Source: Blastocladiella emersonii ATCC 22665 (lineage: Eukaryota; Fungi; Blastocladiomycota). Taken from it: DNA of 64,000 bases. The stretch is taken from positions 930,001 to 994,000 of the forward strand of contig JANHCV010000012.1 in assembly GCA_025594325.1 (NCBI GenBank), given 5' to 3'. Positions 2,417-53,671 of this stretch are shown one piece after another. Under the pieces are notes generated by a model. That model saw only the letters and a program-made list of their open reading frames with translations. It searched no databases and was not told the DNA's origin. Numbering within the stretch: position 1 is the first letter of the stretch; the number at the start of each line of letters is the position of its first letter. Both the position numbers and the translations under genes were made by a program.

Positions 2417-2439
2417 CACGTGTTTTCGCGACGCGTCTC
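2417..2439 (+). promoter_or_regulatory. Bipartite motif CACGTG-N7-GACGCGTCTC
   Basis: Sequence CACGTG TTTTCGC GACGCGTCTC, 126 bp upstream of the DUF4470 ATG, in the divergent intergenic region. It is one of five exact-spacing copies. Function is inferred. Confidence 0.55.
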
Positions 2440-2936
2440 GCGTCGGACGTCGGCTTCATGAGTTTGTCCGTTGATCGAAGTGACCACGTTTTTTCGAAGG
2501 GCTCGCTGACCAGCAGGGCCAACAGCATGTCGGCCGACAGCGCTGCTTCACCCGCGACCACCCCCCGCCACAACCAACCACTTGGCGAGAAGAGCCTTGT
2601 CGCGCCTGGCAGTGCGTTGCCAAGTCGCTCACCGTTGTAGGTCTTAAACATGGGCATGACTGGCGCGGGCCATTACGGAGCACGCGCCGCAGTTTGACAC
2701 GTTCAGCATGCGTTGCGCCGCGCGTCGCTCGCGCAAGCGGGCCTCGATGCGATCCTCAAGCACCGATCCGCCAGCCTCAAACAGGTTATGCTTGAGGAGG
2801 TCAAAAAAGCTGGGATGGGCAGCAAGCTCGACGTTGCCGGCTCTCCGGCTCTGTGGATAACCCGTCAATCAGCTGATCAAAACTCGGCGGTGCCCCCTGC
2901 CCTCGCTTTTTCGCGCATCTGCACAAACCCTTCACC

Positions 2937-4137
2937 ATGGATCTAATGGAAAGGACACTCCCTGCATTGCCGGTTGAGATACTGGATCTTATCTTGCGCG
3001 AAGCCGTTTTGACGCACGGCCCAAACGAGCTCGACAGGCTTGCCGAGTATGGTCACGTCATGCCGCAGGCGTATGCACCGCGCGCCCGCGACACTATTCA
3101 GCAACGGCTTCTCTAGCGCATGGCCATGGACAAAGCCACACACAAGGGTCGCATCGATGTGCTCGAGGCCTGGCGCCGCTCGGGGTTCCCGCTTGGTCAC
3201 ACCGAAAGAGCTTTCTATATTGTCAACTCTTACGAGTTACTCGACTGGTGGTATCGATCTGGACTCGCTTCGACTGGTGGTATCGATCTGGACTCGCTAT
3301 GCCCGAGGTCAAAGAGCCATACCAAGCCCACATTGCTGTTCACCTTATGGGAGAAACTCGCGCGGACGTGAAGATATGAGTACGTTGCGGGTGCTCAAAC
3401 TCAACCTCTCCCGGCTTTCGCTCTTGTCGGACGACATGGCCAATCTCGCATCCTACTTGCCTTCTGGACTAACTCACCTCAATTTCTCGGTCAACGACTT
3501 CAAAGCCCTTGGCGCGGAATAACTCGCGCATCACCTTCCGCCTGGGCTGATCTCGCTTGACGTGTCCAGCAACTGGCTTGGCGATGCGGGCGCTGCCGTA
3601 CTCATCAGCCACATGCCACCGGGACTGCACGAGCTCTCACTACACGAGTGTCGCAATGGCTCAACTGGAATCGTGAACCTCGCCCCACGCCTTCCCGCGA
3701 GCCTAGTTGCCCTGACGATATCAGGGAACGGAATTGATGCGTTTGCAGCAAGGGTTCTCGCGCAGCATCTCCCTCAAGCTCTTGGACGGCTTGACATTTC
3801 GAACCATCCGCTTGGGCTTTGTGCACAAGGTGCCGAGCAACTCGTACATGCTCTGCCGTCGACGCTGCGCTTTCTCTGGCTAAACAACACAGGCGCGACC
3901 GCCGCGGTTGTGTGCACGCGCATGTCGCGCGCGCTATGGAGATTCGTGGACCTGGACATTAGCGGGACGTGTTCGACCCATGTCGCACTCGAGGCCATTC
4001 TCAACCACAATTTGCCAAGCTTACAGTGGCTCGGACTTGCCAACATCACCGATCCAGACACGGGGGACGAGGTTGACATGACATCGTTCCTCGCACGAGT
4101 CCCAGTTGGACTTCCCGTGGACCTGGACGCCGCATGA
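2937..4137 (+). pseudogene. F-box-like/ankyrin-like/LRR family pseudogene
   Basis: Starts LPALPVEILDLILREAV, then KGRIDVLEAWRRSGFPL, then RNI-like LRRs (LPSGLTHLNFSVN, LPPGLHELSLHEC). Lesions: in-frame TAG at 3114-3116, a frameshifting 29-bp duplication at 3241-3298, and in-frame TAA at 3520-3522. Confidence 0.75.
3241..3298 (+). repeat. Perfect 2 x 29-bp tandem duplication
   Basis: TCGACTGGTGGTATCGATCTGGACTCGCT occurs at 3241-3269 and again at 3270-3298. Confidence 0.95.
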
Positions 4138-4311
4138 ATGTATCGGTGTTATGATCTGTCTCGGCGCAGATGGGCAGTCTCGGGCGAACGACGCGTCGTT
4201 CATAACACGTGATGTGAACAACGCGAAGCTCAGAGGACAGGTATTGCGCAGCTTCATCGCACCCGTCCAGAAATTCATTCAAAATCTGCATTCAAATGAT
4301 TACACCTATTG

Positions 4312-7599: not shown

Positions 7600-8296
7600 T
7601 CTGCATAGATTCATTTTGCAATGCATGGAGTTCGCAGGATCCGTAGCCCACTTTGACAGCGTGCCTCAACTTGATCCTCTCGAGCAGGTTTAGGGCGACG
7701 TTTAACGCGTCTCCCACGCGAGACAAGCGCGCGCGAGACATCACATGATATCGCGACGCGTGGCGCGGCTGCCACCATTTTTCGCAACCTGGACGTGCTG
7801 AATTATCCTAGAAGGGTTCAAGCAGGACACGTATATTCATGAAAATTATCAATAGAGCGCGAGCCGCTTCTCACGAAACTGGAGGGAGCGGGCGGCGGAA
7901 AGTGGTCGCTCCACGTCGGCCGCGCATATCGCAAGGGGTCCCATCCATTCGTGCTCATGGCTTACGTTGGTGTGAAAAGGCGAGCAGAGCGAGGAGCACG
8001 AGAAGATCCGGAGACAGCTTAGCCCAGCTCGCCCGAGTTTCAGGCATCAGCTGACCGGGCGTGATTGATCGTCGCGTCTCCCCCTCCGTCTCGCGACGGG
8101 CGGAAGTCTTTGTTTCTCATACTCGTGGAGAAATCTAAGCGCTCTCGAAGTTCGCGTTAAATTTGGCCATCGTCGAGCTACGTTTCGAGAGAACTCAGAA
8201 GGACCGCTAGTGGACGAGGTTCGAATAGAATCGTGTTACATTTCCCTTCTGCGGCCAACAACAACGAAAAGGGTGATAATCTCTCAAACTCTTAGC

Positions 8297-9600: not shown

Positions 9601-10434
9601 GGTTGAGTGTCTATGAGCGCGGAGCTCGAGCCTAGTTTGAGATGACAGAGAGTTGGACGCGGGGGCGCGGGCGGTCTTTATAGTCGGCGGCTGTCCCTGA
9701 ACGAGATCTAGCACCACGGAACTGCTTCGCCACACAAGCAACCGCGCGCGTGCGCCTCGAAGAACGAGCGCGTGCACGGACTGTGGCGAGGCGCGCGTGA
9801 TGCATCGTGTGATGCCGAGCGCACGCGAGCGGATCGAGGCGACGGAAGCGTGGGCCCTCCGCAGACCGCATGGGCCCGCACTTGCCCTGTTGGTGTAAGT
9901 CGCAGCGATGGTCGTTTGATGTCGAGGTCATCATCGATCGCATCAGATGATATCCCGACGCGTCCCTTGTCTCGCGGCGTGTCTCCCCGAAGGAATCAGG
10001 CGGTATTCCAACACGGCTCTCGTCTCGCGCTGCGTCGTCCCGAAGAGCTGCCGCGAGCGGAGGCCTCGGACAGCACAACGTTCTACTCGCCTTTATGTCC
10101 TGGCCATTGAATATGAGGTGCACGCCCGACTGGATCCGAGGAGTGATATTCGGTGATACTCGGCGGTCAGGTGATCAATTTGACGCGCAACGCCACTTTC
10201 GGGTCCCGCGGTCCTGCCCCGTTGACGTTTCCTCCCTCGCCTCGCTGCCTTCTCAACGAAAGCGCACTCTGTGCAACACGAAACTACATGCAATGTCAGT
10301 CCCGCGATGCTATAAACCCGGCCCTTGAGTCCGACTTGGTCTCTGACCCGACCGCACATCTAGCCTCGGACGCCCCCTCCCCTCCGCCACAGCCAGACGC
10401 CTCGACGTCGCCCGACGGCCTGGCGTCACACTCA

Positions 10435-18843: not shown

Positions 18844-20583
18844 GCTTACTTAGGGTTTAAAATGCCTTCGCAGCGCGGGGAGGAGTTCCTCAATTACCGT
18901 GGCGAAGCGGGGAAACGCGCTGCGTCACTGATCGGCTGATCACAAAGCGTGACTGGTGCAATGCGAGCCACGCGGAGCGAGACAGTTTGGATTTCCTGAT
19001 CGAAGATCTAAAGACAAGCAGCAATATTGTATTGTGAGCCGCACACACATCACCGATCCCATCACGCTCGAGTTCCATCAGGTCCACAATTCTTTCACGT
19101 CGTCGGATGCAAACTTCTTGACCTGCTTCTTCCAGCGACGCACGACTTTCGTGTCTTCAACGGCCGTGTGCCAGTCCTTGGCCGCGGTCGCAGAGACAAA
19201 CTCGGTGACGTCGGCCTTGGTCGCCGCGGGGTCCCGCTGTGCGACGAGCGCGAGCATGTCGTTGCGGCCGTGGCGGCGCGCGAGGGCAAGGAACTTGGCC
19301 GCGTCCAAAGTAAGCTTTGACTTGGCGAAGAACAAACAGTCTGGTCGCTGAGGAGGCACTCGAGCACCTTGAGCGAGCGCGCGCGGAACTCGGACCGTGG
19401 AATCCGAAGGTCGCACTGCGCGACGTGCTCCTCGACGAGACATTTCGCGAGACTCGAGGTATTGAAATACATGTCCTCGCTCAATAAGTGCTTGAGCAGC
19501 TCGACGTTCCCCGCGCGGACCGCGGCACAGAGCAGCTCCGGGTACGTGAGCCCGCCGGGTGCTTTGAAGCGCTTGTCGCTGGCGATCAGCTCGTACAGCT
19601 CAATGCTTCCGCACGCGCCGATCGCCCACTCCCATGCCATGGTCCACGGCGGCTTGTCATAGGTATCGTATCCGTCGTCATCATCTTCGTCGTCGCGCTC
19701 GTCGTCACTCTCGCTGGGAAAGAAGTCCCAGGTCCGAGCTGGAGGCGCGTAGCCAACGCCAGTATAGCTTACCACGAGAATGCGCTCCCGAGAGCCCTTG
19801 AGAAGCAATTTCACCGACTCGATGCGTTTGAGCCGCAGCGCCGCGTCGAGCGCCGCGTTCACATTGTCCGGGTGCGTGCCGTTGAGTAGGGCCCGCTTGA
19901 GCGCGAGATGCCGGTCCAGAATCGCGTCAAGAACAAGCGAGCTGCATTGCGTCGCGGCGCTGGTGAACTGAAGCTTCGGCGCGAGCAGCGCGAGGATCTC
20001 GGCGAGCGGCGCAAACGACGCCGCGTGCCACCACTCGCACTGCGGATGCTCGACTAGCAATTTGACCGTCGCCTGGCACTTGGCCGTAATGCGCCAAGAA
20101 GCCTTGCTCGATTTCGGAACATCGACGGCCGCGACGGCCTCGACGAGCGCCCACAGGAACAGGTACTTGAGGTGCCGGCCGACCTGGCCCGAAGTCGGCA
20201 CGGGCCACGTCGCCTTGGGCCCAATGAAGCGAGCGAGAAGCGACGCGTCGTGGTACTTTGCAGCGACAATCATGGCTTTGTAGTTGAGAGTGGGACCGCC
20301 CGTCGTGGACGGGTCGTCTAGCAACTCTTTCATGCGCTCGTACTCCAAAACCAGCGAGTTGACGTTAAGCATAAGGGCCCGTTTGGTTCAGATCAGGTGG
20401 ATCAGCTGAAAAAGTTGCCACGTTTCACCTCACCCCCGTTCATCTCAGCGGCCGTGCGAACCAAACGCCCCGCTGGATGAACGCCCCCCCGCAATAAAAT
20501 CTTTCCCACCTCTTTGCAGCCGCACTTATTGCAACGAATCAACACCTAACCTCACGCATCGTGTTCTCGAGCCCTCAAACAAC

Positions 20584-21901
20584 ATGGACAAGGGATACAA
20601 CCGCAAGCTGCGCGGCCTAATGCTCACAGCCGCCCTCGCTCTCCTGCGACGTCTCGCTGCGCGCAACGAGCGCCGCCCGTGGGAGCCTATCCGCACGTCC
20701 ACGCTTTCTGGCGAGTCGTGGGTTCAAGAGCTGCTGACGTGCAACAGCGAAACGCGTTTTTCGGAAATCGCCCGTATGCCCCGCGAGACCTTCAAGGCCA
20801 TCTGCCGCCTGTTCCGCGACCGTGGCCTTCTCGCCGACGGCCGCGAGCTGTCCGTCGAGGCGCGCTTCATGGTTTTTCTTGTCATGGCCGGCGAGGGCAG
20901 CACCAACCGCAACCTCAGGGAGCGGTTCCAAATCTCTGGCGAGACCGCGTCCAGGGTTCTGAAGCAAGTGCTCGACGCTCTGTACCGCCTGATGCCCGAG
21001 TTCATTGTCCAGCCGTCCGATTCTACGCCCGTGCATGAGCGCATCGCCCACGACCCGAAATACGCTCCGTTCCAGAACGCGGTCGGCGCGCTTGACGGAA
21101 CGCACATCCCGTTTGTTGTGCCCACTAAGCTTCACGACTCGTTCCGAAACCGCAAGGGGACCATATACTCAAATGTCCTCGCTGCCTGCGACTTTGACTT
21201 GAACTTCACCTACGTTCTCGCAGGGTGGGAGGGCAAGGCGCATGACTCGCGCGTGCTCTCGGACGCCTTCGCCCGTGGGTTCAAGATCCCCGCCGGCCGC
21301 TTCTACCTCGCCGACGGCGGCTACGCAAACCGCACGTCCATCATCGTGCCCTTCAGCGGTACCCGCTATCATCTTCGCGAGTTTGCCCGCGGCAAGGATG
21401 GGTACGTTCTCACTGCCATGACCATCACGTTGGCGCCATCTCATCCGCTTCATCAACGTACGTAGAGTTAAGAACCGCGAGGAGCTTTTCAATCTGCGTC
21501 ACGCGTCGCTCCGCAACTCCATTGAGCATATCTTTGGCGTGCTCAAGAAGCGGTTCCGCGTCCTCTCGATTGGCGCGGCCTACCCAATCAAGACTCAAGT
21601 CAAGCTTGTGTACGCGCTCTGCACGCTGCACAACATGATCAACAAGTGGAACCAAGGCGGCGACGCCTTCTTTTGCGACGCCGAGACGGAGCTCCGGCGC
21701 GCGCGGGACGCGGCGCGTGAGGCGCGTGTGCGTGGGCGCGAGCCCCTGAACGACGAGAACGAGGAGGACGACGAGGCCGCTGTCCTCGAGGCCTCGCTGG
21801 ACGGAGCTCGTCAGCGCGGTATCTCGCTTCGGAACCGCGTCGCAAATGTTCTTTGGACCGAGTACAGGCGCGTCATGGCCGCTCGTGGGACCCGTCTTTG
21901 A
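20584..21901 (+). CDS. Harbinger/HARBI1-like DDE transposase (DDE_Tnp_4 family)
   Basis: Motifs GALDGTHIP, YLADGGY and ELFNLRHASLRNSIEHIFGVLKKRF. Intron 21402-21465 (GTACGT...CGTAG) joins the two ORFs in frame. Confidence 0.93.
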
Positions 21902-22023
21902 AGGCGCGAAATAATTGTTGTACCCGCATGCATGCTGTAATATACTGATTTGTCAAGTACTATAATGTTATATAAGCGATTCTAGATGATTTGACGCGTC
22001 GCTGAGGTCAGAATGCATCGGTG

Positions 22024-22046
22024 GAGACGCGTCGATCAATCACGTG
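22024..22046 (-). promoter_or_regulatory. Bipartite motif CACGTG-N7-GACGCGTCTC inside the transposon
   Basis: The + strand reads GAGACGCGTC GATCAAT CACGTG, which is the reverse complement of CACGTG ATTGATC GACGCGTCTC. Confidence 0.45.
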
Positions 22047-22214
22047 ACGTGCGAGACACTTTGCGAACCACGCGTTTCTCAACGAGTCGCGTCATTTTCG
22101 AGCCAAGGGTAACGATTGAAGATACGATGGACACAAAGCCAGATGTATTGGACACAAATGGGCGAGAACAAGGCCAGGAAGCAACGCGAGGGGAGGGGGA
22201 CATGTGCGAGTGAG

Positions 22215-22679
22215 CTACTGAATGAAAATCTCGAGGATGCGCTTGCGCTTCGATTCGGACACGGCCATGACGCGAAGCGCTTGATCCTCGGTCAGGCGGG
22301 TGGCGACGTCGATCTGGTACTCTTCATTGTCGTTGTACGCGTCCTGGACCCATTCAAGTGCGGCGGTCAGAACGGGCTTGGAGTCGGCGGTCGCGACCCT
22401 CTGGAACACCTCCTTGATGCCCATGAGGAATTCCGAGTCCGAGAGGCGACGCGAGCTGCTGTCCGAAGTGCGGCTGCGCTTGCTGGCGGGGGCCGCGTCG
22501 TCTTGACCATCGACACCTTCCACGTCACCAGACTCCTTGCCGTCCTGCTCGAGGTGCGAGTACTCGCCGGTGGTGGTCGAGCTGCCCCACGAAGGAAAAC
22601 AGCGTTTATATAGGCCGGGAAGCACAGCCTGAAGGTTTCGGGGGCGAGCAGACGGGCAATTCAGCGACGAGGGTTCCAT
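22215..22679 (-). CDS. Harbinger second ORF (putative C-terminal part of the Myb/SANT-like partner; may be 5'-truncated)
   Basis: Lies inside the TIRs, convergent to the transposase. It has an acidic/Ser linker and a helical C-terminus. No Trp-spaced Myb/SANT repeat is visible. Confidence 0.5.
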   Translation of the reverse strand: MEPSSLNCPSARPRNLQAVLPGLYKRCFPSWGSSTTTGEYSHLEQDGKESGDVEGVDGQDDAAPASKRSRTSDSSSRRLSDSEFLMGIKEVFQRVATADSKPVLTAALEWVQDAYNDNEEYQIDVATRLTEDQALRVMAVSESKRKRILEIFIQ

Positions 22680-23833
22680 TCAGCTCATCCGGGGGTCGAC
22701 CCAAACGCCGCGATGAACGCGACGGGGTGAAAATGCCACGTTTCAGCTGGGTGAACACCGGACCGTGTAAAATCGATTGATCCACCTGATTCACCCCGGA
22801 ACCAAACGGGCCCTAAGCAAGAACTCGAGCTCCTCCTGTTCGGGTGCAACCGAATTGTCGCGAGCTGGCGTTCGTGTCGTGAGGTTGCTGCGGAGCCACG
22901 TCAAGTGCGTGAAACCACGCTGCTGGGTCAGGTACTGGACCAGCAGCCTATGCACGTCGACGCGCTCGCAAGTGAGGTACGCCTGCAAGATGCGCTCGAG
23001 TACGGGGCTCGGGATCTCCCACGGATCCCAAACTGGCCCGTACTTGTGTCGGTGCAGATCGAAATCGGGACGAGCTAAGAGCAGCTTGACCAACTCCTCG
23101 GACCCACGGCCTGCATCGCACTCGCATTCGATGCCCTCGATGGCGTCGCGCAGGTGCTCGCCGCGATAGTCCGGATCGAACCGGAAGTTCGGGGACTCGA
23201 GGATCGCGCGCGCCAGTTCCGTTGAGCCGCGACGAAGCGCGTCGCCAAGATGTTTGTCCAGGGGACAAAAGCAGCGCACTGGCTCTGCAAGCAGTGAGCG
23301 GACGAGAGCAACGTCGTTGGCTCTGATGGCCGCCTCAAAGCGCTTTACAAACGTCAGCGGCTGAGGGCCGCGTCGACTTCCATATCGATACATGTTGCAC
23401 GTAGTTTCGTTTAGTTTTTGCGTTTCATAAACTTAGAGCTAGAGGGCTCGGATCACAATTTGCTGGCTGCGCTGTTGATCAGCTGTCTTGGCCCGCGTTC
23501 GTGGTCGGAGTGCGTGTTGACCACAGGGTGCGAGACACGACGCCTAATTGAGTTCCTTGCCTTGTATCACGTATGATTTCGGCATCTATGCTGCTGCAAC
23601 TCACTGGAAAACGAAATGCGCAAATATTTTTGACCCGGTAGCCACGTCGCTGACGTCTGATAGCCAACGCCGAGAGGCGACTCGCGATCACAAGCGCGGG
23701 TACCTTGATACGATTTGAATTACCTGCCTCAGCAGGGCGACCGACAACACGAACTTCCTGACCAAGCTCGCTCGATCCGCAGCTGATCAGGCGACGTAGA
23801 GCGGGATTGTCGAAGCCCAGGTGAAGGCTTGAC

Positions 23834-23866
23834 GTGTTGCGCCACTCACGTTTCGCGACGCGTCTC
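23834..23866 (+). promoter_or_regulatory. Composite copy joining both recurrent motifs
   Basis: GTGTTGCGCCACTCACGTT TCGC GACGCGTCTC, about 440 bp upstream of ankyrin-like copy 2. Confidence 0.4.
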
Positions 23867-29135: not shown

Positions 29136-31571
29136 TCAAGAGTTCGTACACGAGGTATGAGGGAAGCAGTGGTGGGTAAGGGGGTGCAAAACTGGGGACG
29201 TGTATGACAAAACTACTCGTCGGCGCTCGACAGGCTGGAACTGCTCCTTCCAGCGGCGCATGACCTTGGTACCCTCCATCGCGGTGCGCCAGTCCTCGGC
29301 CTCGACGGCTGCCACAAACTCGTCCGTCTCCTCCTGGTCCGCGGCCGGGTCGCGGCGGGCGATGGCGGCGAGCACGTCGTTGCGGCCGTTGCGGAGCGCG
29401 AGCTTGATCACCTTGCCCGCAAACTCGTTGAGCTTGGCCGCGTCGCCGGTCCCGCTGGCCAGGAGCGGGCTGCGGCCGGCGCAGAAATATTTGAACATCT
29501 TGAGCGACGTGGCGCGGAACTCGGCAAGCGGGACGCGGACGTCGCGCTGCGTGACGTGCTCGTCGGCGAGCTGCTCGACGAGCTCCTCGTCGCCGCGGAG
29601 GCCCGAGTACGCGGGGCCCTCGAGGTGGAACCAGTCGAGCAGGTCGATGTTCCCGTACCGCATCGCGGCGAGAATGCGCTTGTCCGAATCGAACCGGTTG
29701 ATGCCGGTAAACCGTCGGTCGCGCTGGAACTGGCGCCACACGTCCAGGTCGCACGCGCCGATCGCCCACTCCCAACTCGAGTGCCAGAAGGGGAGGTTGC
29801 CGTACCCGACGCCGCGCACGTCGCGCGATGCCGTCAGCAGGAACTTGACCGTGTCGGTCTGCTTGAGCCGCAGCGCCACGTCGAGCGCCGCGTTCACGTC
29901 ACCCGCCGCGACCGCACCGCGCTTGAACGCGTCGCGCATCGGGTCGCGCCGCTTGAGCATCGAGTTGACGACGAACGCACCGCGGCGCGTCGCGGGGGTG
30001 AAGACGAGCGTCGGCGCGAGCAGCTTGACGAGGTCGTCGAGCGGCGCAAACGACGCCGCATGCCACCACTCGCACTGCGGGTGCTCGAGCAGCAGCTTGA
30101 CCGTCGCCTTGCACGCGCGCGTGACGCGCCACCGCGCATCGGGGGTTGCGGGCACGGCGAGCGCGTCGACGGCCTCGACGAGCGCCCACAGGAACAGGTA
30201 CTTGAGGTGGCGCCCGGTCTGGCCGGCCGTGGGGACGGGCCACGTCGCGTCGGGCCCGATGAAGCGAGCGAGTAGCTCGGTATCGTGATAGCGCGCGGCG
30301 ACGATCATGCCCTTGTACTGGAGGGTCGCGCCGCCCGCGGTCTTGGCGTTGGCGAGCAGCTCCTTGACGCGCTCGACGTCGGCGGGCGCGAGCGAGTCAA
30401 CGTTGCGGGCGAGGAGCGACTCGAGTTCGGCCTGCTCGGGCGCGACACTCGCGTCGCGCGGCAGCGGCGTGAGGTGGTCGCGCAGCCACGACAGCCGCGT
30501 GACGCCCTGCACGCGGGCGAGGCAGTTGACGAGCACCTCGTGGACGTTAGCGCGCTCGCACTTGACGTAGGCGCGCAGGATGCGCTCGCGGACGGGGCTC
30601 GGGAACTGCCACGGGTCCTCGAGGACGTCAGTAGCGCGGCGGTGCGGGTCGAACTTGGGGTGGGCGAGGAGGAGCTCGATGTTCTCAGCGTAGCGCGGGT
30701 CGGCGACGCGCGGGTGGCGGCCCGAGCCGAGCGCGTCGTACAGGTGGTCGCCGCGGTAGTTGCGGCGGAACTCGAAGCGCGGCGACGCGAGCAGGACGCG
30801 GACGAGGTCGGTCGGGCCCTCGGACAGCGCGGTGCACAGGTGGAAGTCGGTCGGGCGGATGCGCTTGCGCGGGTCGGCGAGGAGCGACTGCACGAGCGCC
30901 ACGTCCTTGGCCTCGATGGCGGCCTCAAACTCCTCGTCGACGGGCGGCTCGGGCTCGTCGTCATCCTCGTCGTCGCGAGCCGCCGAGACCTCGTACGAGT
31001 AGTCGACCGAGTCGTCAATGACGTCGCCAGCCTTGAAATTGAACTTGCTCGTGTCCTCGAACAGCGGCGAGTTGGCGATGAGGGGGACGAGGTGCGTGAA
31101 GTTGCGGTCCTTGGCGAGCTTGAGGTGGAACGACGACGGGACGAAGCGGTTGTGGTAGTCGTCGAGGAACGCCTGGAGCAGGTCGGCGCGCCCGAGCTTG
31201 ACGGCGTCCTCGAGGAAGAACGAGCCGCGGTTCTGGATCGGGAAGAAGAAGTCGGGCCGCAGCAGGTGCTTGATGACGGCAGGTCGGTGTCCAGCGAAGG
31301 CGGTCCACAGCTGCATCTCGGGGTTCCGCGGGCCGTTGCGGCGGTCGTCGGCGAGCGCGATTGCGCACGGGTCCTTGCCGTTGCGCAGCGCATAGATCCA
31401 CGCGTCGCCCGAGCTCAGCACGTGAGCGTACTCGGGCTGCGCGAGCAGTGCCTGCATCTGCTCGACGTCGTTGGCGTCAATCGCCGCGAGGACGGCGCGG
31501 GTGTGCTCGTCCTCGGCGGGCGGCCGGACGTTCTCGTTGAAGTGGTTGCTCAGGACTTCAGGTTGCGACAT
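29136..31571 (-). CDS. Ankyrin-like helical repeat family copy 3 (intact, with extra N-terminal repeats), about 811 aa
   Basis: Uninterrupted ORF from MSQPEVLS. The AAIDAND and AAIEAKD helices are repeated. Shared core YKGMIVAARYHD...RFIGPDATWPVPTAG...HLKYLFLWALVEAV...HPQCEWWHAASFAPL. Confidence 0.8.
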   Translation of the reverse strand: MSQPEVLSNHFNENVRPPAEDEHTRAVLAAIDANDVEQMQALLAQPEYAHVLSSGDAWIYALRNGKDPCAIALADDRRNGPRNPEMQLWTAFAGHRPAVIKHLLRPDFFFPIQNRGSFFLEDAVKLGRADLLQAFLDDYHNRFVPSSFHLKLAKDRNFTHLVPLIANSPLFEDTSKFNFKAGDVIDDSVDYSYEVSAARDDEDDDEPEPPVDEEFEAAIEAKDVALVQSLLADPRKRIRPTDFHLCTALSEGPTDLVRVLLASPRFEFRRNYRGDHLYDALGSGRHPRVADPRYAENIELLLAHPKFDPHRRATDVLEDPWQFPSPVRERILRAYVKCERANVHEVLVNCLARVQGVTRLSWLRDHLTPLPRDASVAPEQAELESLLARNVDSLAPADVERVKELLANAKTAGGATLQYKGMIVAARYHDTELLARFIGPDATWPVPTAGQTGRHLKYLFLWALVEAVDALAVPATPDARWRVTRACKATVKLLLEHPQCEWWHAASFAPLDDLVKLLAPTLVFTPATRRGAFVVNSMLKRRDPMRDAFKRGAVAAGDVNAALDVALRLKQTDTVKFLLTASRDVRGVGYGNLPFWHSSWEWAIGACDLDVWRQFQRDRRFTGINRFDSDKRILAAMRYGNIDLLDWFHLEGPAYSGLRGDEELVEQLADEHVTQRDVRVPLAEFRATSLKMFKYFCAGRSPLLASGTGDAAKLNEFAGKVIKLALRNGRNDVLAAIARRDPAADQEETDEFVAAVEAEDWRTAMEGTKVMRRWKEQFQPVERRRVVLSYTSPVLHPLTHHCFPHTSCTNS

Positions 31572-31680
31572 GTTGCATGCATAGGAGGGGTTTAAAAGCG
31601 GCTTTGCGGGGAGAGTGAGCAGCGGAGCGACGAGGAACGACGACAAAGGAGAGCGCCCAAAATCGAGCGCTCAAGCCCAA

Positions 31681-31703
31681 CACGTGTTTTCTCGACGCGT
31701 CTC
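31681..31703 (+). promoter_or_regulatory. Bipartite motif CACGTG-N7-GACGCGTCTC
   Basis: CACGTG TTTTCTC GACGCGTCTC, 110 bp upstream of the ATG at 31571. Confidence 0.55.
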
Positions 31704-31906: not shown

Positions 31907-33159
31907 TCACGTCAACTCGGCCTCGTCCTCATAATCGTGACTGATCCGAAGCTTCGAAAGTGCCCAAAGATGACACTCCCTCAGAATCGACCGCAGCTCG
32001 CCGCCGTCATCCATTGCGCGTAGGTCGAGTTTCTCGAGGCTCGCTGGCACGTTGTCAAACAGGGGGTCGATGCCCGCCCGCGAGATTCGGTTTCTGCTCA
32101 AGTTGAGATACTGGAGGCGCGGGGGAAGCTGCGACATGATTGGACCGTAGGCCTCGTCAGTTAGACTAACACCATCGAGATCAAGAAACTTGAGACCAGC
32201 GGGAAGGTGCTGAACCAGCTTGATCGCGCCCGAATTTCCGAGGAAGTTCGCGCAAACGGAGAGCTGGCTAAGTCCAGCCGGAAAGTGTTGAGCGAGCTCT
32301 GCAATATTATCCGCGTTAAGGCCGCAGTCACCGAGGTGCAGGTTCCGCAAGCTTGACGGGAAGCACAAGCGCTGGCCGTTAGAAGCAGGCGCCACTGCGC
32401 CGTGTCCGACCCAGTTGTACCACAAGCTGAGCTCGGTCACCGTTTCCGGGAGGCGCAGCGCGCAAAGAACTGGAAAGGTAATGTTGCAGCAGGTAAGCTT
32501 GACGTTGGTGATCGAACCGCTCTTCGCCATGACATCGGCGAGTAGAGCAGCACCAGCCTCGGTAATCCGGACTTCGCTAATCTTCATGTCGGAGCGGCCG
32601 CTCCGCCCAATGACATCAGCTCGCGCGCGAACGAGAGCGTCGCCAACTGAGGCACTGTCGCGTCGATGAAGTTGCTAGTAATGTGTGGGAATACGCTTCG
32701 CGTCAGCCATGATCAGCGGTGTAGCGACAGGAACCATACCATTTTCTGTGCGCCAGGGGTCCGGTCGACCTCGCCGTGAAAGTACACGACGACTCGGTTC
32801 GCGGAGCTGTTGAAGTACAGTGCAGGGAGAGGAAGGCCCGATTGGTCCCACCAAAGCAGCGCTTTATAGGACCGGGTGTAACCAAACAAGATTTCCGAGT
32901 ACTTGATCGGCAAGCGCGAAAGCAACCATTCGTCAAGAAGCTTGGTTTGTCCCGTCCAGCAAGCAGCGTTGACTGAAAGTTCCTTGGAGTGGCGGAGCAG
33001 GGCGCGGTGGACGCGCGGTGCGGCCGCTCTCGACATGACGTGTGTGTATTGCAGCATCGCTTTGTGCTCGCTGTCGTCGTGCATGGCGACGGCCTTGCAA
33101 AGGATCTCGTCGATGATCGAGTCGGGTAATGCTGCAAGTCTTTTATCCATTCGCTTCAT
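31907..33159 (-). CDS. F-box-like/ankyrin-like/LRR protein (intact), about 395 aa
   Basis: Exon 1 is 33159-32740 (LAALPDSIIDEIL...LWWDQSGLPL), followed by a phase-0 intron at 32739-32675. Exon 2 is 32674-31907 and encodes RNI-like LRRs (FPSSLRNLHLGDC, LPAGLKFLDLDGV). Confidence 0.8.
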
Positions 33160-33244: not shown

Positions 33245-33267
33245 CACGTGATTGATGAACGCGTCTC
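33245..33267 (+). promoter_or_regulatory. Bipartite motif CACGTG-N7-AACGCGTCTC
   Basis: CACGTG ATTGATG AACGCGTCTC, 86 bp upstream of the ATG at 33159. Confidence 0.55.
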
Positions 33268-35147: not shown

Positions 35148-35996
35148 CGTTGTCGTACTCAGCGAGCAGCACGTTCACGACGCGTCCCGCCGCTCACGTG
35201 TGGAGCCCCGCGGCGCGTCTCAAGCCTCTCCCGTGCTGCGTGCGGCGGTGGCGCCCGCACGTCAAGCCGCCGCCATCGCACCCCCGCCGCCACACCGCCG
35301 CCGCGAGCGCACCAGACCTTGTCCCTGAGCTGCTGCGCGGCCGTGGCCGGCGAGGAAGGCGCGCCGATGACGCTCGGGCCAGGGCCGGGTCGCAGAGCGC
35401 GAGCGCTAGTTCCGCAGACGGCAGGTGCGCGGGTGCCCGCGCGGGCCAGGCCACGCGCGGCGCGTCTCGCGGTCATCGGCGCTCGCTGACCACTCTCGAG
35501 TCGATGATGATGGTGATGGACGAGGCCCGCAACAAGCACGCCGCGCTGTGAAGGGTGACGCGTTCGTTCCCACGCGTACGGCGGAGCGCTCCCGAGAAGT
35601 CCCGCACGCCCACGCTTGGGAGAGCGGGCCACGCGAGCGCGTCGCGCTTCTTGCATGGTGAACAATGCGAGGCGCAGCGCTGCGTTGCTGCGGCCGGTCA
35701 GCGTGACGGAGAGAGGAGCAGGCGGTGGAGCGGAAACAGGACGCCGCCCCGATGCCGCGGGCGCATCTCGGTTTGCTTGAAGTGCGGCGCCGGCCGGCTT
35801 CATCAAGGCACCCGCCCGCCTTCGACTCGTTCCCATCACACGGTGCTCGTCAACAAATACGACCGGCTGCATCGGGACCTCTCCCTCTCTCTCTCCCAGC
35901 AACGCAGCCAGTGCAACGCATCGACACACCCACACGCACCGACCACCCGGCGTCACCCTCTACGCATCGACTAGACGCCACCCTTCACCCCCAACC

Positions 35997-38739: not shown

Positions 38740-38970
38740 TTTCGGGTGGGTTACATGGGTTGCGCTCGGGAGAGAGAGAGCGGATTCGGTCCGCGAGCTG
38801 TGATCTCACACCTTTGCAGAGCGTGAAAACCGCAGGGAGAACGCGTCGGCGCCGCGGCGAGGTGACCGCACGTGGCGGGCGACGCGTGCGTCACTTCTTC
38901 TCTTCTTCGCGCCGCCGATCGCTCACGCTCTCCCCAACCGACGCAACGCAACGCAGCGCAACGTAATCGC

Positions 38971-41564: not shown

Positions 41565-42233
41565 GGAGGCCGTCCGGGATGGGCGGCGGCGGTGGCGGCG
41601 CGGTCGAGGGTGGATGCAGCGACCAGCCCGCGGTAGAAGAACAGCGCAGCGACGAGGGTCTAGCGGGACTTGAGGGTCGGTGGTGCTTTGCGCCGATGGC
41701 TGCTCATGTCACCCACGAGGCAGATGGTGGTGGGGATGGTAGCGGGGCCTCCTCGAGGGGGCACACGGAGAGCAGCGGCGGCGGCGGCGATCGCGAGAGC
41801 TGCGTTGCGTTGCGTTTGGACGGGCGCTACCCGGCGAGATGCATGGAAAGTGGGCAGGGTACGAGGGCGAGTTGATGGTGCTTCTCGCATTCCAGTGCAC
41901 CCTCGAAAACGCGCGCGCGAGGCAGCGGGCGGCCGGAGACGCGTCTCACGCGACGCGGCGTTCATCCGCGCGCGGCGATACCAGGTGACATCAGCCGCGT
42001 GGCCGAATGACGCCGCCGCGCGATCATCGCGCCGCCCGCTCTCATTCGCGACCCTCGCACCCCTCTACCACGTAGCTCTGCCGGCAGCGACTTGCTGCAC
42101 CCGACTCGCACACGCACCGCCGGCGCACCCGCCCATCCACCGTCTGGCGCGAGTTTGCCTGCCGAGCCAGCCGAGCAGCCCGCCGTCTGCCTCCACAACA
42201 CCGACTTCTACCGCCAACACCACCAACATCATC

Positions 42234-44948: not shown

Positions 44949-45190
44949 GAGGAGAAGGGAGAGCGGGAGGTTGACTTAGTTACACAATCATCGAATCAAT
45001 CGTCATATTTGCTACGCCTTCGCTCGCTTGTCGTGTGTCGGAGATGTTCGTTGAAAGCAGGGGACTGAGCAGAGGGTTGTGCTTCGCTGTGCGCTGTGCG
45101 CTTTGCGCCTGGCTCGAGGAGTTGCATGCGCGTCCACCTCCCCGCTCTCCCGACCTTCGCGCAAACCCATGAAGCTCAGCTAGCAAGACA

Positions 45191-46966: not shown

Positions 46967-47062
46967 GTCAAAGTTGAGGAAAATGTACGGTTGAGCCGCC
47001 GTTCTGTAAGTTAGCCCGATGTTGTATTGCGTGGAAACAAAACGAGCCTTTGTTCAATTAAC

Positions 47063-47081
47063 GCGTTGCGCCACACACGTG
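47063..47081 (+). promoter_or_regulatory. Motif GCGTTGCGCCACACACGTG
   Basis: Identical to 50145-50163, and one mismatch from 56402-56420. Confidence 0.45.
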
Positions 47082-47139
47082 TTCGCCGTTTCAAAAAGTG
47101 GGTCGCACTTGCGCGTCGAGAGCAGCCGAGATCTTCTTC

Positions 47140-47540
47140 GCTGACCTGGTCGCGGACCTGCTCGTCGCCGTGATTTGCATTGAGGCGGCCGCGCGTGGCA
47201 GCTCACACGACCTGATTCGGGTCTGCGGAAAGTACATCACGGACACAAACGCCGACGACACACTGTCGGTCGTGCCTCAGGAGATCACAGGTTACGCAAT
47301 CAGCGGCAACCCGCTCGCCGGGATTTTGCGTAAAGCCTGCGAGGTCGCCGCCAACGCCATCGCTCTTGGATCGCGAGGCCGAAGCGCCCTCAAGCGCAAG
47401 CTGCTGCCCGGGTCCGGCTCCAACTAGGTCGCCCACCGCGCGACCGTCCCTGTCGTCATCGTCCGCACCAGCCCCGACGAAGAGCACGACCACGACGAGG
47501 AGCACACGCCAAGCTCGAGTTCGCCGCGTCGCCACTGAAC
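47140..47540 (+). pseudogene. Universal stress protein (Usp) C-terminal fragment
   Basis: AIALGSRGRSALKRKLLPGSGSN*VAHRATVPVVIVR matches the Usp signature GSRG...GSVSxYVxHxAxxPVxIVR. TAG at 47425-47427 stands where Tyr is expected. The N-terminal half is absent. Confidence 0.7.
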
Positions 47541-48653
47541 GGCGCCATCCAGTCGGGCAGCACCAAGACCGCGCAAAAGTCGCTTTAGCACCACCCTTTC
47601 CCTCAGGTTTGGCGCTCTCCATCGATCGCAGAGATAAACACACACATCCTCATTTTGCTCCACTTGGCCTACTGCAAAAAGCAAGATGTATACCGGCCCT
47701 TCACCGCGGGCGTCGGACATGGCGACAGTCCACACAAGAGCGCGACCCAGTGTACCCGCAGCACGCGCATGAGCGACGCGCAGTTTTTCACGCCGCTCGC
47801 GAGCGTCCTGCGCTTGCTCGAGTCGCGTCCGAGTGCGCCGGGAGCAGCCGCCGCTTGTGCGAGGCCAACAACGAGGGGTGGCCGACTGTGTCCTAACCAT
47901 CTCTTCTCCCGCGTCTTTCAGGTTACTGATGTGAATTTGGGTGAGATGCGGCGAATCTATATTTGAAGTTGAATCCGACCTCGACAGATGAGCCTTGAAC
48001 CACTCGCAACTGCAGTTTTTTTCGTCTACTACTTTGGCTGCGTGGCGAATGTGTTGCGAGCAGATGCTCAGATCAGTCGATGCCCAGGGAAGCGGCCGAG
48101 AGCAGGCAATCAGTTACAAAGCTGCAATCATTTACAAAGCTGCTCCGAAGATGTGACGAGCGCCGTGCACGTGAGCGACTCTTGAATCACACACGTCGTT
48201 TCCCAACCAGGCGTCTTCACCATGGGATCAGGGCTCAAGTGACCCAGATCCAACAGCTTCAGTCAATCCAGTCGAGCAAGATGTCGCTCGCCGACACAGG
48301 GCTGCCGTTCGGGCTCAACCGCCGGGCTACGGGATCGGCAGCCGTCAGCCGGACGCCGGGCGGCTCAGCAAGGATGCATAAAGTGGGCGCGAGTATACAT
48401 TGCAGCAAGCCTTGAGTCGGTTACATGGAGAGTGTGCGATGGAGGGGAAGCGAGAGGGCTGCGGGCAGCGACAAGTGTCACGACAGCGCGCACCATCACG
48501 CGAAAGTGAAACGGGACGCGACGCTCAGCCCAGAACCCCTGGTTCGCCGCAGCACTTAGCCCCCCTGGTTCGCCGAACGCGTGTCCCACGCTTTTCGCTC
48601 CCTGCCTTGAGCCCGAGACGCATGCAACATACGAATTTGAATGAATCAACTCT

Positions 48654-50027
48654 ATGCGAGCCACCATGCGCATCCCGTACGGCATCGTTGAGCGGGCCCT
48701 TGAACTCGCGGTTTACGCGAGCGACCCAGGCGACACCGCCGCGATGCTCAATTACCTCCGCGTTCTCCCACGTGTGCACGGTCAAGCGGTGCACAAGGCT
48801 GTATTGTGCCACGCGACGGCCTTCTCGATCGACAAGGCGAGCGAGGCTGGCCGCATCGCTGTCCTCGACGAGTGGGTCCGCTCGGGTTTGCCGCTCAACT
48901 ACACCAAGAAAGCCCTGGTCAATGCCTGGCTCAATCACCACTACGACGTTGCCGCTTGGTGGCGAGAGTCCGGACTCCCGCTGAAACTTGATCCGGGCGA
49001 GGTTCCTCTGCTATGAATATCCGAAGCCGTAGAAGCTCACGCTGGCGCAGCAAAAAAACGGTACAACTTTGCTTTGAAGCTCGTAGCCGACACCCGTCTG
49101 ACTTGTTGTTCCCAATAGGTTCATGGCTGCGTCCTGGCGACCACTGGCGACTTGTCCATTCTCGATACTTATGACCAGCTTGCCTCGGGCGCTGATAATC
49201 GGCTTCACTTCATGTACGTGCGGCTCACCCAAGGTGGAGCCAAGCTGATTGCCCACCTGCTTTCGGAGGAGCCCGGTTGCATCGTGGACACGATTTCCTT
49301 CACGGACTCGGTGATCACCTTGCCGCTCATCCAATCGATGCGCCTCCCTCCCTCCATGCGTGTGGTGATTTTACGGAGGATCCCCATCGACTACGAGGCC
49401 GAGTTCCTCCGCGGCCCGTGGCTTCCCGAAGGCGTCGAGTCGCTGGCCCTCAAGAACATTTACTTTGGTCGCGGCATCGGACTCGACTTGCTGCCCTCAA
49501 CTTTGGCGGTGCTCGAGATTACCGGGTGCGAGCTGCCGCCTGCTGCAATGCGCTCGCTTGCTCGTGGTCTCCCGCAGCGCCTGCGAACGCTCTCAATCGA
49601 TCGCACGCAACTGGACGATGACGGCGAGGATGGTGAGCCCGGGCAGCCCGCCGTTCACGCTCTCGCCGCACGCATGCCGTCAACTCTTCAAAAGCTCACG
49701 CTGACGAAATGCGGCCTTGATACGCCAGACTTGGTCGCAGTTCTCGCACAAGCATTTCCGGAAACGCTGCTCGAGCTCGATCTCTCGGGCAACAAGTTGG
49801 CTCTGGCAAGTGTTGAAGCACTTGCACCTGGCATTCCCCGTTCGCTCAAGACGTTGTGTCTCAAGAACTGCAGTCTCGATGACAAGTCGATCAAGGTCCT
49901 CATCTCCTCGCTATCGCCCGAGTTTGCTTTGCTCCAAGTCGCGAGAAACCGCATGATCAACCACTCGAGCGCACGGGATTTCTTTGCCAAGCAGTGTCCC
50001 AACGGCAACTATGATAGCTCGTCTTGA
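48654..50027 (+). pseudogene. F-box-like/ankyrin-like/LRR family member (disrupted, or using a weak splice donor)
   Basis: Starts IPYGIVERAL...AGRIAVLDEWVRSGLPLNY...WWRESGLPL, then TGA at 49014-49016. An acceptor near 49118 opens an LRR frame to 50027. The family-position donor at 49061 is out of phase. Confidence 0.6.
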
Positions 50028-50144
50028 ATCATTTGAACGATGAGCTTGTCAATACACTCTTCTAATTCATTGCGCGACAGCTGTATTTGGGTTGTCTGCT
50101 CCACGGCTTTAGGACCTGTGTCCAAGCAGTGAGAATTCAAAGTC

Positions 50145-50163
50145 GCGTTGCGCCACACACGTG
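50145..50163 (+). promoter_or_regulatory. Motif GCGTTGCGCCACACACGTG
   Basis: 100 bp upstream of the family ATG at 50263. Confidence 0.45.
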
Positions 50164-50262
50164 AGCGGTTTCAGCGTGCGAGCCTCGTTCGTTCGCTGAG
50201 CGCAGCCGGGTTCCTCCTCCGCGACCCCACCTGCCATGCATCACACACGCATCGAATGAATC

Positions 50263-51603
50263 ATGGACTTGGTGCAACCTAAGCTTGCCGTGGCCGACAT
50301 CATCGAGGCCGTCTTGGTTCGCGCGGTAAACGCGCACCCGGCCGACGACGTGTGCGCGATGCGCCCGTACCTCAACGTGATGCCTCGCGCGTCCATTTTG
50401 AACGTCACGCGTGCCGTTCTGCGGCGCTGTCCGAGCCTCAGCGTCAAGCACGCGACACGAACAGGAAACCTGGCTCTCTTGGAGCTGCATCGAGACTGCG
50501 GCATGGACTTGACCGTGGATCCTAATGACGCTCTCGAGGCGCTAAATCAGGACATTTGACGACGTCGTCGCTTTCTGGCGTGCGCACACGTCGTCCGTCA
50601 CCTTACAGTTCATTACGCCCATGCAGCTGCGCGTGGCGCTCGATACTACGCGGCTGGACAATAGGAATTCGCCAGCATCTGGCCTCGCACCTGGCGATTT
50701 AGCAGCGATTGCAGCCTCGGATGCCATTTCGCCGGGACAAAGCGAATCAATTGATATACAGCAGCGCCGGATGACGCCCCATCTCACAAACTTGTGCCGA
50801 CTTGAGCTGGAGAGTTGCCTCCCCGCTGCAGACACGGTCAGCGCGATCATTGCTGCGCTTCCCGACTCGGTCAAGGCGCTGGTCCTGAACAACAAAACAA
50901 CTTGATCGATGATGCCGTGTCGAGTGCGCTCGCTGGTCGCGCACTTCCGGGTCTGCGCGAGCTCCGTCTTGCGTGGACCAGTCTGAGTCCAGAACAATTA
51001 CCGGCCCTGGCTGCAGCACTTCCTGCCACGCTTACCACGCTTGATTTTGAAGGCAACTTTGGTATCGACGAGGGGCTCGCTGGATTCATGGAGCAGGCTA
51101 GTGCAAAGGCCACGAGCTTTGAAGCACTTTGCATTGGCAGGATGCCGCTTTCCTCGCTCGATGTGGTGCGATTCGCACGAGCTCTCCCAGCGACGCTCCA
51201 GCTGCTCGACCTTCAGGGCGGCACGTTTGCCTTAAGCGCGCTGGCGCAGCTCTTCGCTGGACTTCTAGCGGAACGGATTGTGCATTTATGACTCCACCTC
51301 GTCAAAATCGACCGAGATGCGCTCGAAGCTCTCGTCACGCTTGTTCAGCGTGCGCCCTGCCTCGCCTTGTTGGATGTGGGCTTTGCCCAACTTGACAACC
51401 GATCCATGGCGCAGCTCATCCCAGCACCCCCCGATTCCCTCGAGGCCTTCATCTTTATGTATAACCGAGTGGACGACCATGTCGTGGAGTTGCTCGAAGC
51501 GCGTGCACTCCCCAAGTTGACCTGGGTCCAAGGCATCTCTGCGCACAGCAGCGACGTTGGCCTTGCTCGGCTGAAAGCATTTCAAGTTGCGCGGTCAAAC
51601 TGA
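50263..51603 (+). pseudogene. F-box-like/ankyrin-like/LRR family pseudogene
   Basis: Starts VADIIEAVLVRAV...TGNLALLEL. LRR segments LPDSVKALVLNN and LPATLTTLDFEGN. Frameshifts near 50550 and 50895, and in-frame TGA at 51289-51291. Confidence 0.7.
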
Positions 51604-51716
51604 GGCGGCCTTTTCTTTGTACAATCACCAGGACGCAGCATGTTTCCCCTCGAATATATCGCCATATCATTACTCCCAGCATCTTCTGATGGTTGTGTCG
51701 GACTAGGAATATATGC

Positions 51717-53096
51717 TTACATTTTGATCATGACACGGCGGTCGAGCACCATGTAGCGCAGGATCACGACAAACACGCCGCCGAGGATCATCGTCGCACC
51801 CGCGAACCCAATGGCCGGCGCAAACTGCCCGCTCGGCAGCGAGCCCTTGGACTCGCTGATGAGCGCCGTGGCAATGGGCGTGCCCGCGGCGTACCCCGGG
51901 ATGTTGCTCGTGGTCATGAGGCCCAGCGTCGACGCGAGCGTCGCCACACCGAAGAGCTGCGCGACGCAGCTCGGCGTGATGCTGAGGAACCCGCCGCTCG
52001 AGAACCCGTAGATGCCCGCGAAAATGTACAGCCACGCCTGCGAGGTGCCGCCGAGCATCCACGTCGTCAGCACCGAGACGCCAGAGGCCAGGATCGACAG
52101 CGCGAGCGACGTGACGTTGCCAATGCAGTCCGCGATCACGCCCATGGACACGCGGCCGAGGATCGACGTGATGTTGAACACGGTGAGCAGCGCGCTCGCA
52201 AAGGCCGGCGAGTGTGGCGTCGCCTTGGCCACGTAGGTCGGGAGGAGGTACGGCGGGACCAGGAATCCGAACGTGTTGAGCGCGAGGCCGATGTAGAGGA
52301 GGATGAAGCGCTTCTCGCGGAACAGGGCGAGGTTGAGGAGCGGCGGCGCGGGCGCACCGCCCGTGCCGTTGGACTTGGACGGAGCAGCGAGACGCGGGCG
52401 CGCCAGCAGCGCAGCGATTGCGAGCAGCGCAAAGTTGATGGCGGCGAGCACGCGCAGGGTCCACGCGACGCCGACGCTCGGCATGATGGCCTGGATCAGG
52501 TTGACGCTGACGAGGCCGCCGACGCCCGAGCCCGCGACCGAGATGCCGATAGCGGTCGAGCGGCGCTTCTGCCACCACTGCGCGACGAGTGCGAGCCCCG
52601 GGTTGAGGCCGAGCGAGCACGAGACGCCGTACAGCACGCCCTGCGTCAACAGCAGGTGCCACACCTGCGTCGCGAAGCTGGCGAGGAGCAGCGAGACGCC
52701 CGAGACGACGGCGCCGAGCGCGAGCGTGTTGCGGAAGCCCCACGACTCGGCGAGGCGGCCCGAGAAGGGGCTGGCGACGGTCATGGCGACGGGCGTGAGG
52801 GTGCCGATCAGCGAGATGACCGAGAGCGACGCGTCCGGGTACTCGACCGTCTTGTACTGGGCGGCGAACAGGCCGAACGAGTTGACGATCCCAAACACGG
52901 CGTAGAAGACGAAGAAGGACACGGCAACCTGCGACCACGCCTTGAACCCGCCGTCGAGCTGGTCGAGCGCGGCCTGATCATCGGCGGCGCTCGCCTCGAG
53001 GAACGCGGCCGAGTCTTGTTTCCGGACAGCCGTGTCGGCGTCGGCGTCCATGGCCGGCGGCACGGTCGCGTAGTCGGTGCGGGTAGTTGATGTCAT
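51717..53096 (-). CDS. MFS monocarboxylate-type transporter (MCT/SLC16, Mch-like)
   Basis: DGGFKAWSQV N-terminal motif, WWQKRRSTAIGISVAGSGVGG, ILGRVSMGVIADCIG, and about 12 TM segments. Confidence 0.92.
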   Translation of the reverse strand: MTSTTRTDYATVPPAMDADADTAVRKQDSAAFLEASAADDQAALDQLDGGFKAWSQVAVSFFVFYAVFGIVNSFGLFAAQYKTVEYPDASLSVISLIGTLTPVAMTVASPFSGRLAESWGFRNTLALGAVVSGVSLLLASFATQVWHLLLTQGVLYGVSCSLGLNPGLALVAQWWQKRRSTAIGISVAGSGVGGLVSVNLIQAIMPSVGVAWTLRVLAAINFALLAIAALLARPRLAAPSKSNGTGGAPAPPLLNLALFREKRFILLYIGLALNTFGFLVPPYLLPTYVAKATPHSPAFASALLTVFNITSILGRVSMGVIADCIGNVTSLALSILASGVSVLTTWMLGGTSQAWLYIFAGIYGFSSGGFLSITPSCVAQLFGVATLASTLGLMTTSNIPGYAAGTPIATALISESKGSLPSGQFAPAIGFAGATMILGGVFVVILRYMVLDRRVMIKM

Positions 53097-53648
53097 GGTG
53101 GTGGGGACGTTGCTTCGTGGTCGCGGTTGTGATGGGGAGCCCTGATTCGAGTCGCGGGGGACCCGGTCCCTTATGTACGCGACACGCGTCGCCCTGCGAG
53201 AACAATGTGAACCGGCTCACGGCCTATCGGATTCACCAAGTTCCGGTGGCCGCATCGCCTTTTTCCGGCGGTCGAGTCGACGGGCGTCGATGAAGCCGAC
53301 GGGAGCGCGAGAACCCGCGGATAAGGCGCGCAGCCTGGGTGCGGCACCCGCGTGGCTGGGACAGGCGGCCCCCCGTGTTACCGCGCTGCGCCACAGGTAC
53401 AGTCAGCGCCCCTCCCTGGCCATCCCTGGCCATGCGTGATGCGGCAACGCGGATCCACGCATTCGAGTCGAGTGACCCCCCGAGTTGTTGATCGTCAACA
53501 AGCGCCCGTTGCGTATCTGATGGTGACGCATTTCGTCGGGCGGGCACGGCGGGCCTTGCCGACGAAAAACAGCGCACTCAACGCGCTGTAGTTCGCGCCA
53601 ACCCGCAGTCAAGTAGTCGAGGGAGAGAGCAAAAGTGTCTCGCGGCAG

Positions 53649-53671
53649 CACGTGATAAATCGACGCGTCTC
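53649..53671 (+). promoter_or_regulatory. Bipartite motif CACGTG-N7-GACGCGTCTC
   Basis: CACGTG ATAAATC GACGCGTCTC, about 550 bp upstream of the MFS gene and just past the LRR gene stop codon. Confidence 0.5.

Follow-up and report, generated by a model that had tools for sequence, protein, structure and literature searches.

What does a short two-part DNA element do when it recurs, at a fixed internal spacing, in front of unrelated genes? The question is raised by a stretch of 64,000 nucleotides from Blastocladiella emersonii ATCC 22665 (assembly GCA_025594325.1, contig JANHCV010000012.1, positions 930001-994000; hereafter the window), which has a GC content of 58-70% and intron-bearing eukaryotic genes. 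An initial annotation had reported there a motif, CACGTG-N7-RACGCGTCTC, as a fixed-spacing pair of sites upstream of accessory genes from unrelated families. We followed this motif through 132 kb of B. emersonii DNA, made up of the window and 68 kb from other loci of the genome (L001, L002 and L003). The motif is probably an oriented upstream promoter module and, to judge from its sequence context, would most likely act as a shared on/off switch for unrelated genes.

The five exact copies claimed for the window were all found, at 2417, 22024 (minus strand), 31681, 33245 and 53649. The expected number is 0.00, as none of 100 dinucleotide-preserving shuffles yielded even one exact copy. Four further exact copies are present in the same genome, at L001 83-105(-), L001 2425-2447(-), L002 21896-21918(+) and L003 6456-6478(+); none was found in an Allomyces locus or in an unrelated locus. 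The spacing of the two hexamers also departs strongly from expectation. Of the 22 CACGTG sites in the window, 13 lie no more than 30 bases from an ACGCGT, where 1.25 would be expected. Over the 132 kb, gaps of 8, 9 and 10 bases between CACGTG and ACGCGT occur nine, five and two times, and every other gap at most twice, with 0.11 expected per gap. Since a spacer of seven bases plus the R of the motif amounts to a gap of 8, this peak is the very spike that had been predicted for a 7-base spacer. A clustering-aware control, where each ACGCGT was shuffled inside its own 1-kb block so that intergenic clustering was kept, gave 0.28 pairs at gap 8-9 against 14 observed.

A chance meeting of two CpG-rich palindromes, both common in a GC-rich genome, has to be weighed against these numbers. 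Copies with three mismatches are indeed no commoner than such an encounter would predict: when up to three mismatches are allowed, 10 matches are obtained in total versus 4.1 expected, so that near-copies are not enriched by count. The empty shuffles and the persistence of the spacing peak in the block control nevertheless reduce the probability of chance to practically nil, and for the exact copies it was rejected on these two grounds.

Conservation is confined to the motif. Alignment of 150 bases on either side of the copies revealed no similarity past its ends, as the initial annotation had stated in calling the flanks unrelated. Read in gene direction, the part invariant over eight copies is GAGACGCGTCG-N6-CACGTG; the strands given below for sites in the window follow this direction, which is opposite to the CACGTG-N7-RACGCGTCTC reading. 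Two points of the first description needed amendment. The spacer had been called variable and is instead partly fixed: C precedes R in four of five copies, and the three to four bases adjoining CACGTG are A/T-rich, A-rich bases directly preceding CACGTG in gene direction. The ACGCGT half, which had been named as the partner, is present, but the constant block beside the spacer is the 11-base GAGACGCGTCG and is thus longer than ACGCGT.

The motif is not a piece of one long dispersed repeat: long alignable flanks were not seen, and neither inverted end repeats nor alignable flanks surround the copies outside a transposon described below. With flanks that cannot be aligned and no end repeats, this candidate was rejected. 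Features of a dispersed repeat or miniature inverted-repeat transposable element are absent from most copies, the exceptions being the two copies in Harbinger elements and a 46-base block that 53649 and L003 4245 share with them. A known RNA family was also rejected, as Rfam models gave no match at gathering score across the whole window.

Position relative to genes was determined by putting all copies in one orientation and taking the first ATG-initiated open reading frame (ORF) on the CACGTG side. Leaving aside the copies in the transposon and that at 53649, six copies have an ATG at 85-125 bases, in every case on the CACGTG side. Three of them are in the window, all before minus-strand genes, at the distances that had been indicated. 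The copy at 2417..2439(-), which reads GAGACGCGTCGCGAAAACACGTG on the gene strand, is 125 bases before ATG 2291 of a DUF4470 gene (570-2291(-)); that at 31681..31703(-) is 109 bases before ATG 31571 of an ankyrin-like gene (29136-31571(-)); and that at 33245..33267(-), where R is A, is 85 bases before ATG 33159 of an F-box-like/LRR gene (31907-33159(-)). Outside the window, the L002 copy precedes a second DUF4470 paralog by 99 bases and the L001 copy an annotated pterin-4a dehydratase gene by 116 bases, while the L003 copy is 123 bases before a first exon of 24 codons, which ends at a GT intron and precedes an LRR exon. Behind the six copies are thus DUF4470 (two paralogs), ankyrin-like, F-box/LRR (two) and pterin-4a dehydratase genes. 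The DUF4470, ankyrin-like and F-box/LRR proteins have no mutual BLASTP similarity (E > 0.2), so the three families are non-homologous, as proposed. About 2.8% of sites would have an ORF of at least 140 codons starting in such an interval; for five or six hits of seven, P is then about 1e-7 to 1e-9, for an interval picked after the data had been seen. This tight and one-sided distance at six copies is a positional bias of the kind that the initial annotation had anticipated, measured here to the ATG.

In gene direction, GAGACGCGTCG is followed by an A-rich spacer of 6 bases and by CACGTG, and after some 40-70 bases come a CT-rich tract and the ATG. Constraint is evident in spacing, in orientation and in position. 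Although the proteins of the two DUF4470 paralogs are only 32% identical, their upstream DNA shares the module, the CT-rich tract, an AATGC box and little else; the module is kept in paralogs whose promoters have otherwise diverged. We also noted that the same promoter layout recurs between module and ATG (window 2292-2416 and 31572-31680; L001 130-221), with a CT-rich tract, a CATGCA-/AATGC-like box and caccATG. The CATGCA-/AATGC-like box may mark the transcription start.

Several copies are also close to gene ends. Those at 31681, 33245, 53649 and in L002 lie 86-233 bases past the stop codon of the same-strand neighbour, and both the Harbinger copy and a hexamer pair at 4191 lie between convergent 3′ ends. 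Such places would suit a terminator, an insulator or a chromatin boundary between close-packed genes. The copy at 2417, however, occupies a divergent intergenic region, between ATGs 2291(-) and 2937(+) and away from any gene end. ATG distances (85-125) vary much less than stop-codon distances (86-233), the module always has the same orientation towards the downstream gene, and it is followed by a CT-rich tract typical of fungal promoters, in which such tracts sit just upstream of transcription starts. We therefore consider a gene-end or boundary mark unlikely. The motif is read as a promoter module because of the tight one-sided distance to the ATG, the divergent setting at 2417 and the footprint common to the DUF4470 paralogs; these observations are less readily explained by a repeat, a terminator or chance.

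The copy at 22024..22046(+) had been counted among the upstream elements of accessory genes. It lies instead inside an intact Harbinger transposon of 2.44 kb (20374-22814), which has 16-base perfect inverted end repeats (20374-20389 and 22799-22814) and splits an ankyrin-like gene (19095-20372 and 22791-23393). The transposase gene (+) and ORF2 (-) run towards each other, and the motif lies between their 3′ ends, downstream of both. A second, near-identical Harbinger element in L001, just upstream of an F-box-like gene, carries an identical motif at L001 2425-2447. A homolog search with the Harbinger transposase returned no annotated B. emersonii copies. In addition, a block of about 46 bases (AAAGTGTCTCGC-N4-5-E-box-N7-GACGCGTCTC) is common to the Harbinger copy, the 53649 copy and a degenerate copy at L003 4245.

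From the two identical transposon copies and the shared block, it could be argued that a Harbinger-type transposon scattered the motifs as debris or passengers, and that they do nothing regulatory themselves. Yet the other six copies share only the motif with the element and have no inverted end repeats nearby. Random landing would not give ATG distances of 85-125 bases in one orientation, debris would not persist in paralogs of 32% protein identity, and the transposon may equally have picked up a host module. Taken together, these points make a passenger origin very unlikely as the explanation of the motif.

Directly after the copy at 53649..53671(-) come a second GCGAGAC box and a CT-rich tract; a 41-codon ORF begins 117 bases away. 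Exactly beside this module runs the boundary of a 5.36-kb segmental duplication of 99.7% identity (L003 9475-14834 = L004 9475-14834; window ~48263-53622), which carries the MFS gene and two F-box-like genes and whose copies are about 76 kb apart on one contig. The other copy of the duplication has different DNA at this boundary.

CACGTG is the hub of several arrangements, and the fixed pair is one member of a larger module family. The pair as first described is genuine, but it represents only one arrangement among a wider CACGTG-centred set. A second motif, B, is ACGCGT-TGCGCCAC[AT]-CACGTG (ACGCGT-TGCGCCACW-CACGTG), with a gap of 9, and has three exact copies in the window versus 0.06 expected. 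At 56400..56445(-) it is accompanied by a distal MluI cell-cycle box (MCB), as GCGTTGCGCCACT-CACGTG-N19-ACGCGT, 240 bases before ATG 56174 of an F-box-like gene. At 50143..50163(+) it reads CGCGTTGCGCCACA-CACGTG and precedes ATG 50263 of a plus-strand F-box-like gene by 99 bases. The third copy, ACGCGT-TGCGCCACA-CACGTG at 47061..47081, has no clear ATG-initiated gene nearby. A 121-codon ORF (47062-47424(+)) of coding-like composition, with no ATG, begins at this copy and may represent a gene that is truncated or whose first exon went unrecognised. Motif B occurs four more times outside the window (L001 7374, L001 8464, L002 15500 and L002 21887), and a degenerate copy at 23838-23852 is found within a degenerate three-box form, TGCGCCACT-CACGTT-N4-GACGCGTCTC, at 23838..23866. 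At L002 21887-21918 and L001 83-120, both motifs are merged around a single CACGTG.

The longer-spacer variants mentioned in the initial annotation are present as well. The first, ACGCGT-N9-CACGTG-N14-GCGTCTC at 35180..35221(-), has its CACGTG 47 bases from ATG 35147 of an F-box-like gene; the second, CACGTG-N20-ACGCGTCTC at 58532..58566(-), is 100 bases before a 190-codon ORF (ATG 58431). Forms with a spacer of 19-20 bases are found at 56415 and 58532. A gap-7 variant, CACGTG-N7-ACGCGT at 38869..38887(-), is 129 bases before ATG 38739 of the gene for an acyl-CoA-binding protein (ACBP). Extra GTCTC boxes repeat with a period of 12 bases, at +18 and +30 from CACGTG, and in some copies the gene side of CACGTG bears a second GCGAGAC box. 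Another partner of CACGTG was observed in L002, where GTTCATCAA-CACGTG-AT...AAAATC(ACGCGT) is present in three copies (4763, 5939 and 8216) that look like promoters of tandemly duplicated genes.

Accessory GTCTCGC/GCGAGAC boxes are also borne by the flanks of the near-copies that had been listed at 7742, 8058 and 9944. These sites do exist, with three mismatches each, but by number they do not exceed chance. The first, CACATG-N7-GACGCGT, belongs to a box cluster (7705..7764) with ACGCGTCTC and two GCGAGAC boxes. The second, GGCGTG-ATTGATC-GTCGCGTCTC (8058..8080), is followed by a GTCTCGC box, and the third, CAGATG-ATATCCC-GACGCGTCCC (9944..9966), by GTCTCGC and GTCTC boxes 12 bases apart. Elsewhere in the window, a perfect 12-base palindrome, GAGACGCGTCTC, was noted at 41937-41948 between a CatSper-like gene and UBE2O, with no CACGTG nearby.

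How might such a module be read? The module has two perfect palindromes whose centres are 14 bases apart, which suggests a pair of dimeric proteins that touch. A dimeric E-box protein, of the basic helix-loop-helix (bHLH) or bHLH-zipper type, would sit on CACGTG, the box nearest to the gene, and a second sequence-specific protein would occupy the 11-base GAGACGCGTCG. The rigid 14 bases between centres would let the two proteins touch and bind cooperatively. A response would then arise only where both boxes are in register, and in this way unrelated families could be tied into one expression programme. An E-box protein plus a second protein on GAGACGCGTCG seems to us the most economical reading of the motif; the second protein could possibly be of the MBF/APSES type, of the CG-1 type or of another.

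Alternatively, a single protein could read the whole 23-25 bases, through several DNA-binding domains or as an oligomer, for instance of the multi-zinc-finger or CG-1 type. The long constant block and the partly constrained spacer, A/T-rich beside CACGTG, speak for it, as do the CG[CT]G core common to all three hexamers of the three-box forms and the repeat of GTCTC boxes at +18 and +30. CGCG-type and CGTG-type sites are reportedly both sites of the plant CAMTA3 family, and for the CG-1 class both such cores have been reported, which adds to its case. However, CACGTG pairs with differing neighbours (TGCGCCACW, N19-20 spacers, a GCGAGAC box on the other side), for which independent modules are a better fit than a single protein, and both halves are perfect palindromes such as dimers bind. 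Recognition by one protein is thus doubtful, and we favour two proteins at adjoining sites.

A number of observations weigh against the motif being a promoter module in general. The 132-kb sample is skewed to accessory gene islands. The copy at 22024 faces no credible ORF from its position in the transposon, and for the copy at 53649 the nearest annotated ATG, that of the MFS gene (53096), is at a distance of 552 bases. A gap-9 pair, ACGCGT-N9-CACGTG at 4191..4211, breaks the promoter rule by lying in the 3′ region between an LRR gene and a G-protein-coupled receptor (GPCR) gene whose ends converge. Only about four of seven F-box-like first exons have the module nearby, and where genes stand in tandem, the stop codon of the previous gene also lies 86-233 bases before the module, which might there act at gene 3′ ends or as a boundary. 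The proposed restriction to accessory genes did not hold: an exact copy is found at the pterin-4a dehydratase gene and the gap-7 variant at the ACBP gene, so that at least one housekeeping gene bears the motif, at odds with a simple accessory-gene regulon. Such a regulon also does not readily accommodate the copy within the Harbinger transposon or the 46-base block that the 53649 copy shares with it.

Most of the F-box/LRR and DUF4470 genes are not called by the public annotation, and the exact DUF4470 ORF of the window has no record as a gene product. In the window, the GC content at third codon positions separates two gene classes: the conserved genes (CLC channel, UBE2O, MFS, ACBP) are at 0.90 or above, and a class C GPCR, two DUF4470 genes and the Harbinger genes are at 0.70-0.77, with LRR exons still lower. 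The module could help to locate accessory genes that the public annotation leaves uncalled, and could serve to ask which transcription factors drive the programme. B. emersonii is under development as a model for fungal phototaxis and for optogenetics, and no promoter description was found for the species; a compact upstream module with a strict layout offers a handle for expression tools. It would also be a clean natural case of rigid two-site spacing kept over many unrelated promoters, and the module-bearing transposon hints at one route by which such sites spread.

Full-text searches, for both hexamers in fungi and for promoter motifs of B. emersonii, brought up no description of the module, and the B. 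emersonii genome paper is silent on promoters. Relatives of the module were also sought in other species. The ACBP gene of Allomyces arbusculus, the only Blastocladiomycota ortholog recovered, has GAGACGCGTC-N33-CACGTG 331 bases before its ATG (L005 9625-9675), with the same boxes in the same order as in B. emersonii but at a different spacing. The 21-kb locus of this ortholog has no gap-8 or gap-9 pair; about 2.2 would be expected at the density of B. emersonii, and the Poisson probability of finding none in this one locus is about 0.11. The closest match to the pterin-4a dehydratase, from an unrelated metagenome eukaryote of 42% GC, is without the motif, and no relatives of the ankyrin-like family turned up when metagenomes were scanned with its core.

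Comparison with known systems begins with ACGCGT, the established site of MBF (MCB; APSES/KilA-N factors in fungi). The module resembles the MCB in its hexamer core and in its promoter-proximal position, ACGCGT being present in every copy at 85-125 bases (plus 14) upstream of the ATG. It differs in having a longer constant block, GAGACGCGTCG, tied to an E-box at fixed spacing, and in that the genes concerned (DUF4470, ankyrin-like, F-box/LRR, pterin-4a dehydratase, ACBP) are not G1/S or DNA-synthesis genes. Since these genes are not cell-cycle genes and the block exceeds the MCB, the motif was not filed as an MBF site. SBF-family factors have been inferred for the ancestor of Fungi (PMC4862756, PMC9457484). 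Possible, if rather speculative, is a switch of the Blastocladiella lineage in which an MCB-like site, a legacy of the cell-cycle circuit of early fungi, would have become joined to an E-box at rigid spacing and multiplied, partly by the motif-carrying Harbinger transposon, before hundreds of species-specific and receptor genes; these would form one large life-cycle-stage regulon, mostly missed by annotation.

The vertebrate CGCG element, TCTCGCGAGA, is a feature of CpG-island, housekeeping promoters that fire in both directions, and has no E-box partner (PMC6192621). Like it, the module is CpG-rich and partly palindromic, and TCTCGCG is found at the outer edge of several copies (ACGCGTCTCGCG); the palindrome here is however GAGACGCGTCTC, as compared with TCTCGCGAGA there.

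The other half of the module, the perfect palindrome CACGTG, is present as in the E-boxes of bHLH and bHLH-zipper proteins (Cbf1, Pho4, Myc/Max and USF types). Half of the copies read ATCACGTG, which we take to be like the yeast CDEI/Cbf1 site. In contrast to an ordinary E-box, CACGTG here is the hub of several fixed arrangements. Composite elements with fixed partner spacing are known from yeast, where Pho4 acts with Pho2 at PHO5 and Cbf1 with Met4, Met28 and Met31. The dependence of Pho4 on a partner factor is the subject of PMC12177071. As in these composites, an E-box is accompanied by a second site nearby, and the constraints on spacing and orientation, both fixed at six independent promoters, would imply contact between proteins. 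Unlike them, the module has another partner sequence, keeps its rigid spacing at many unrelated promoters, and belongs to an early-diverging, zoospore-forming fungus.

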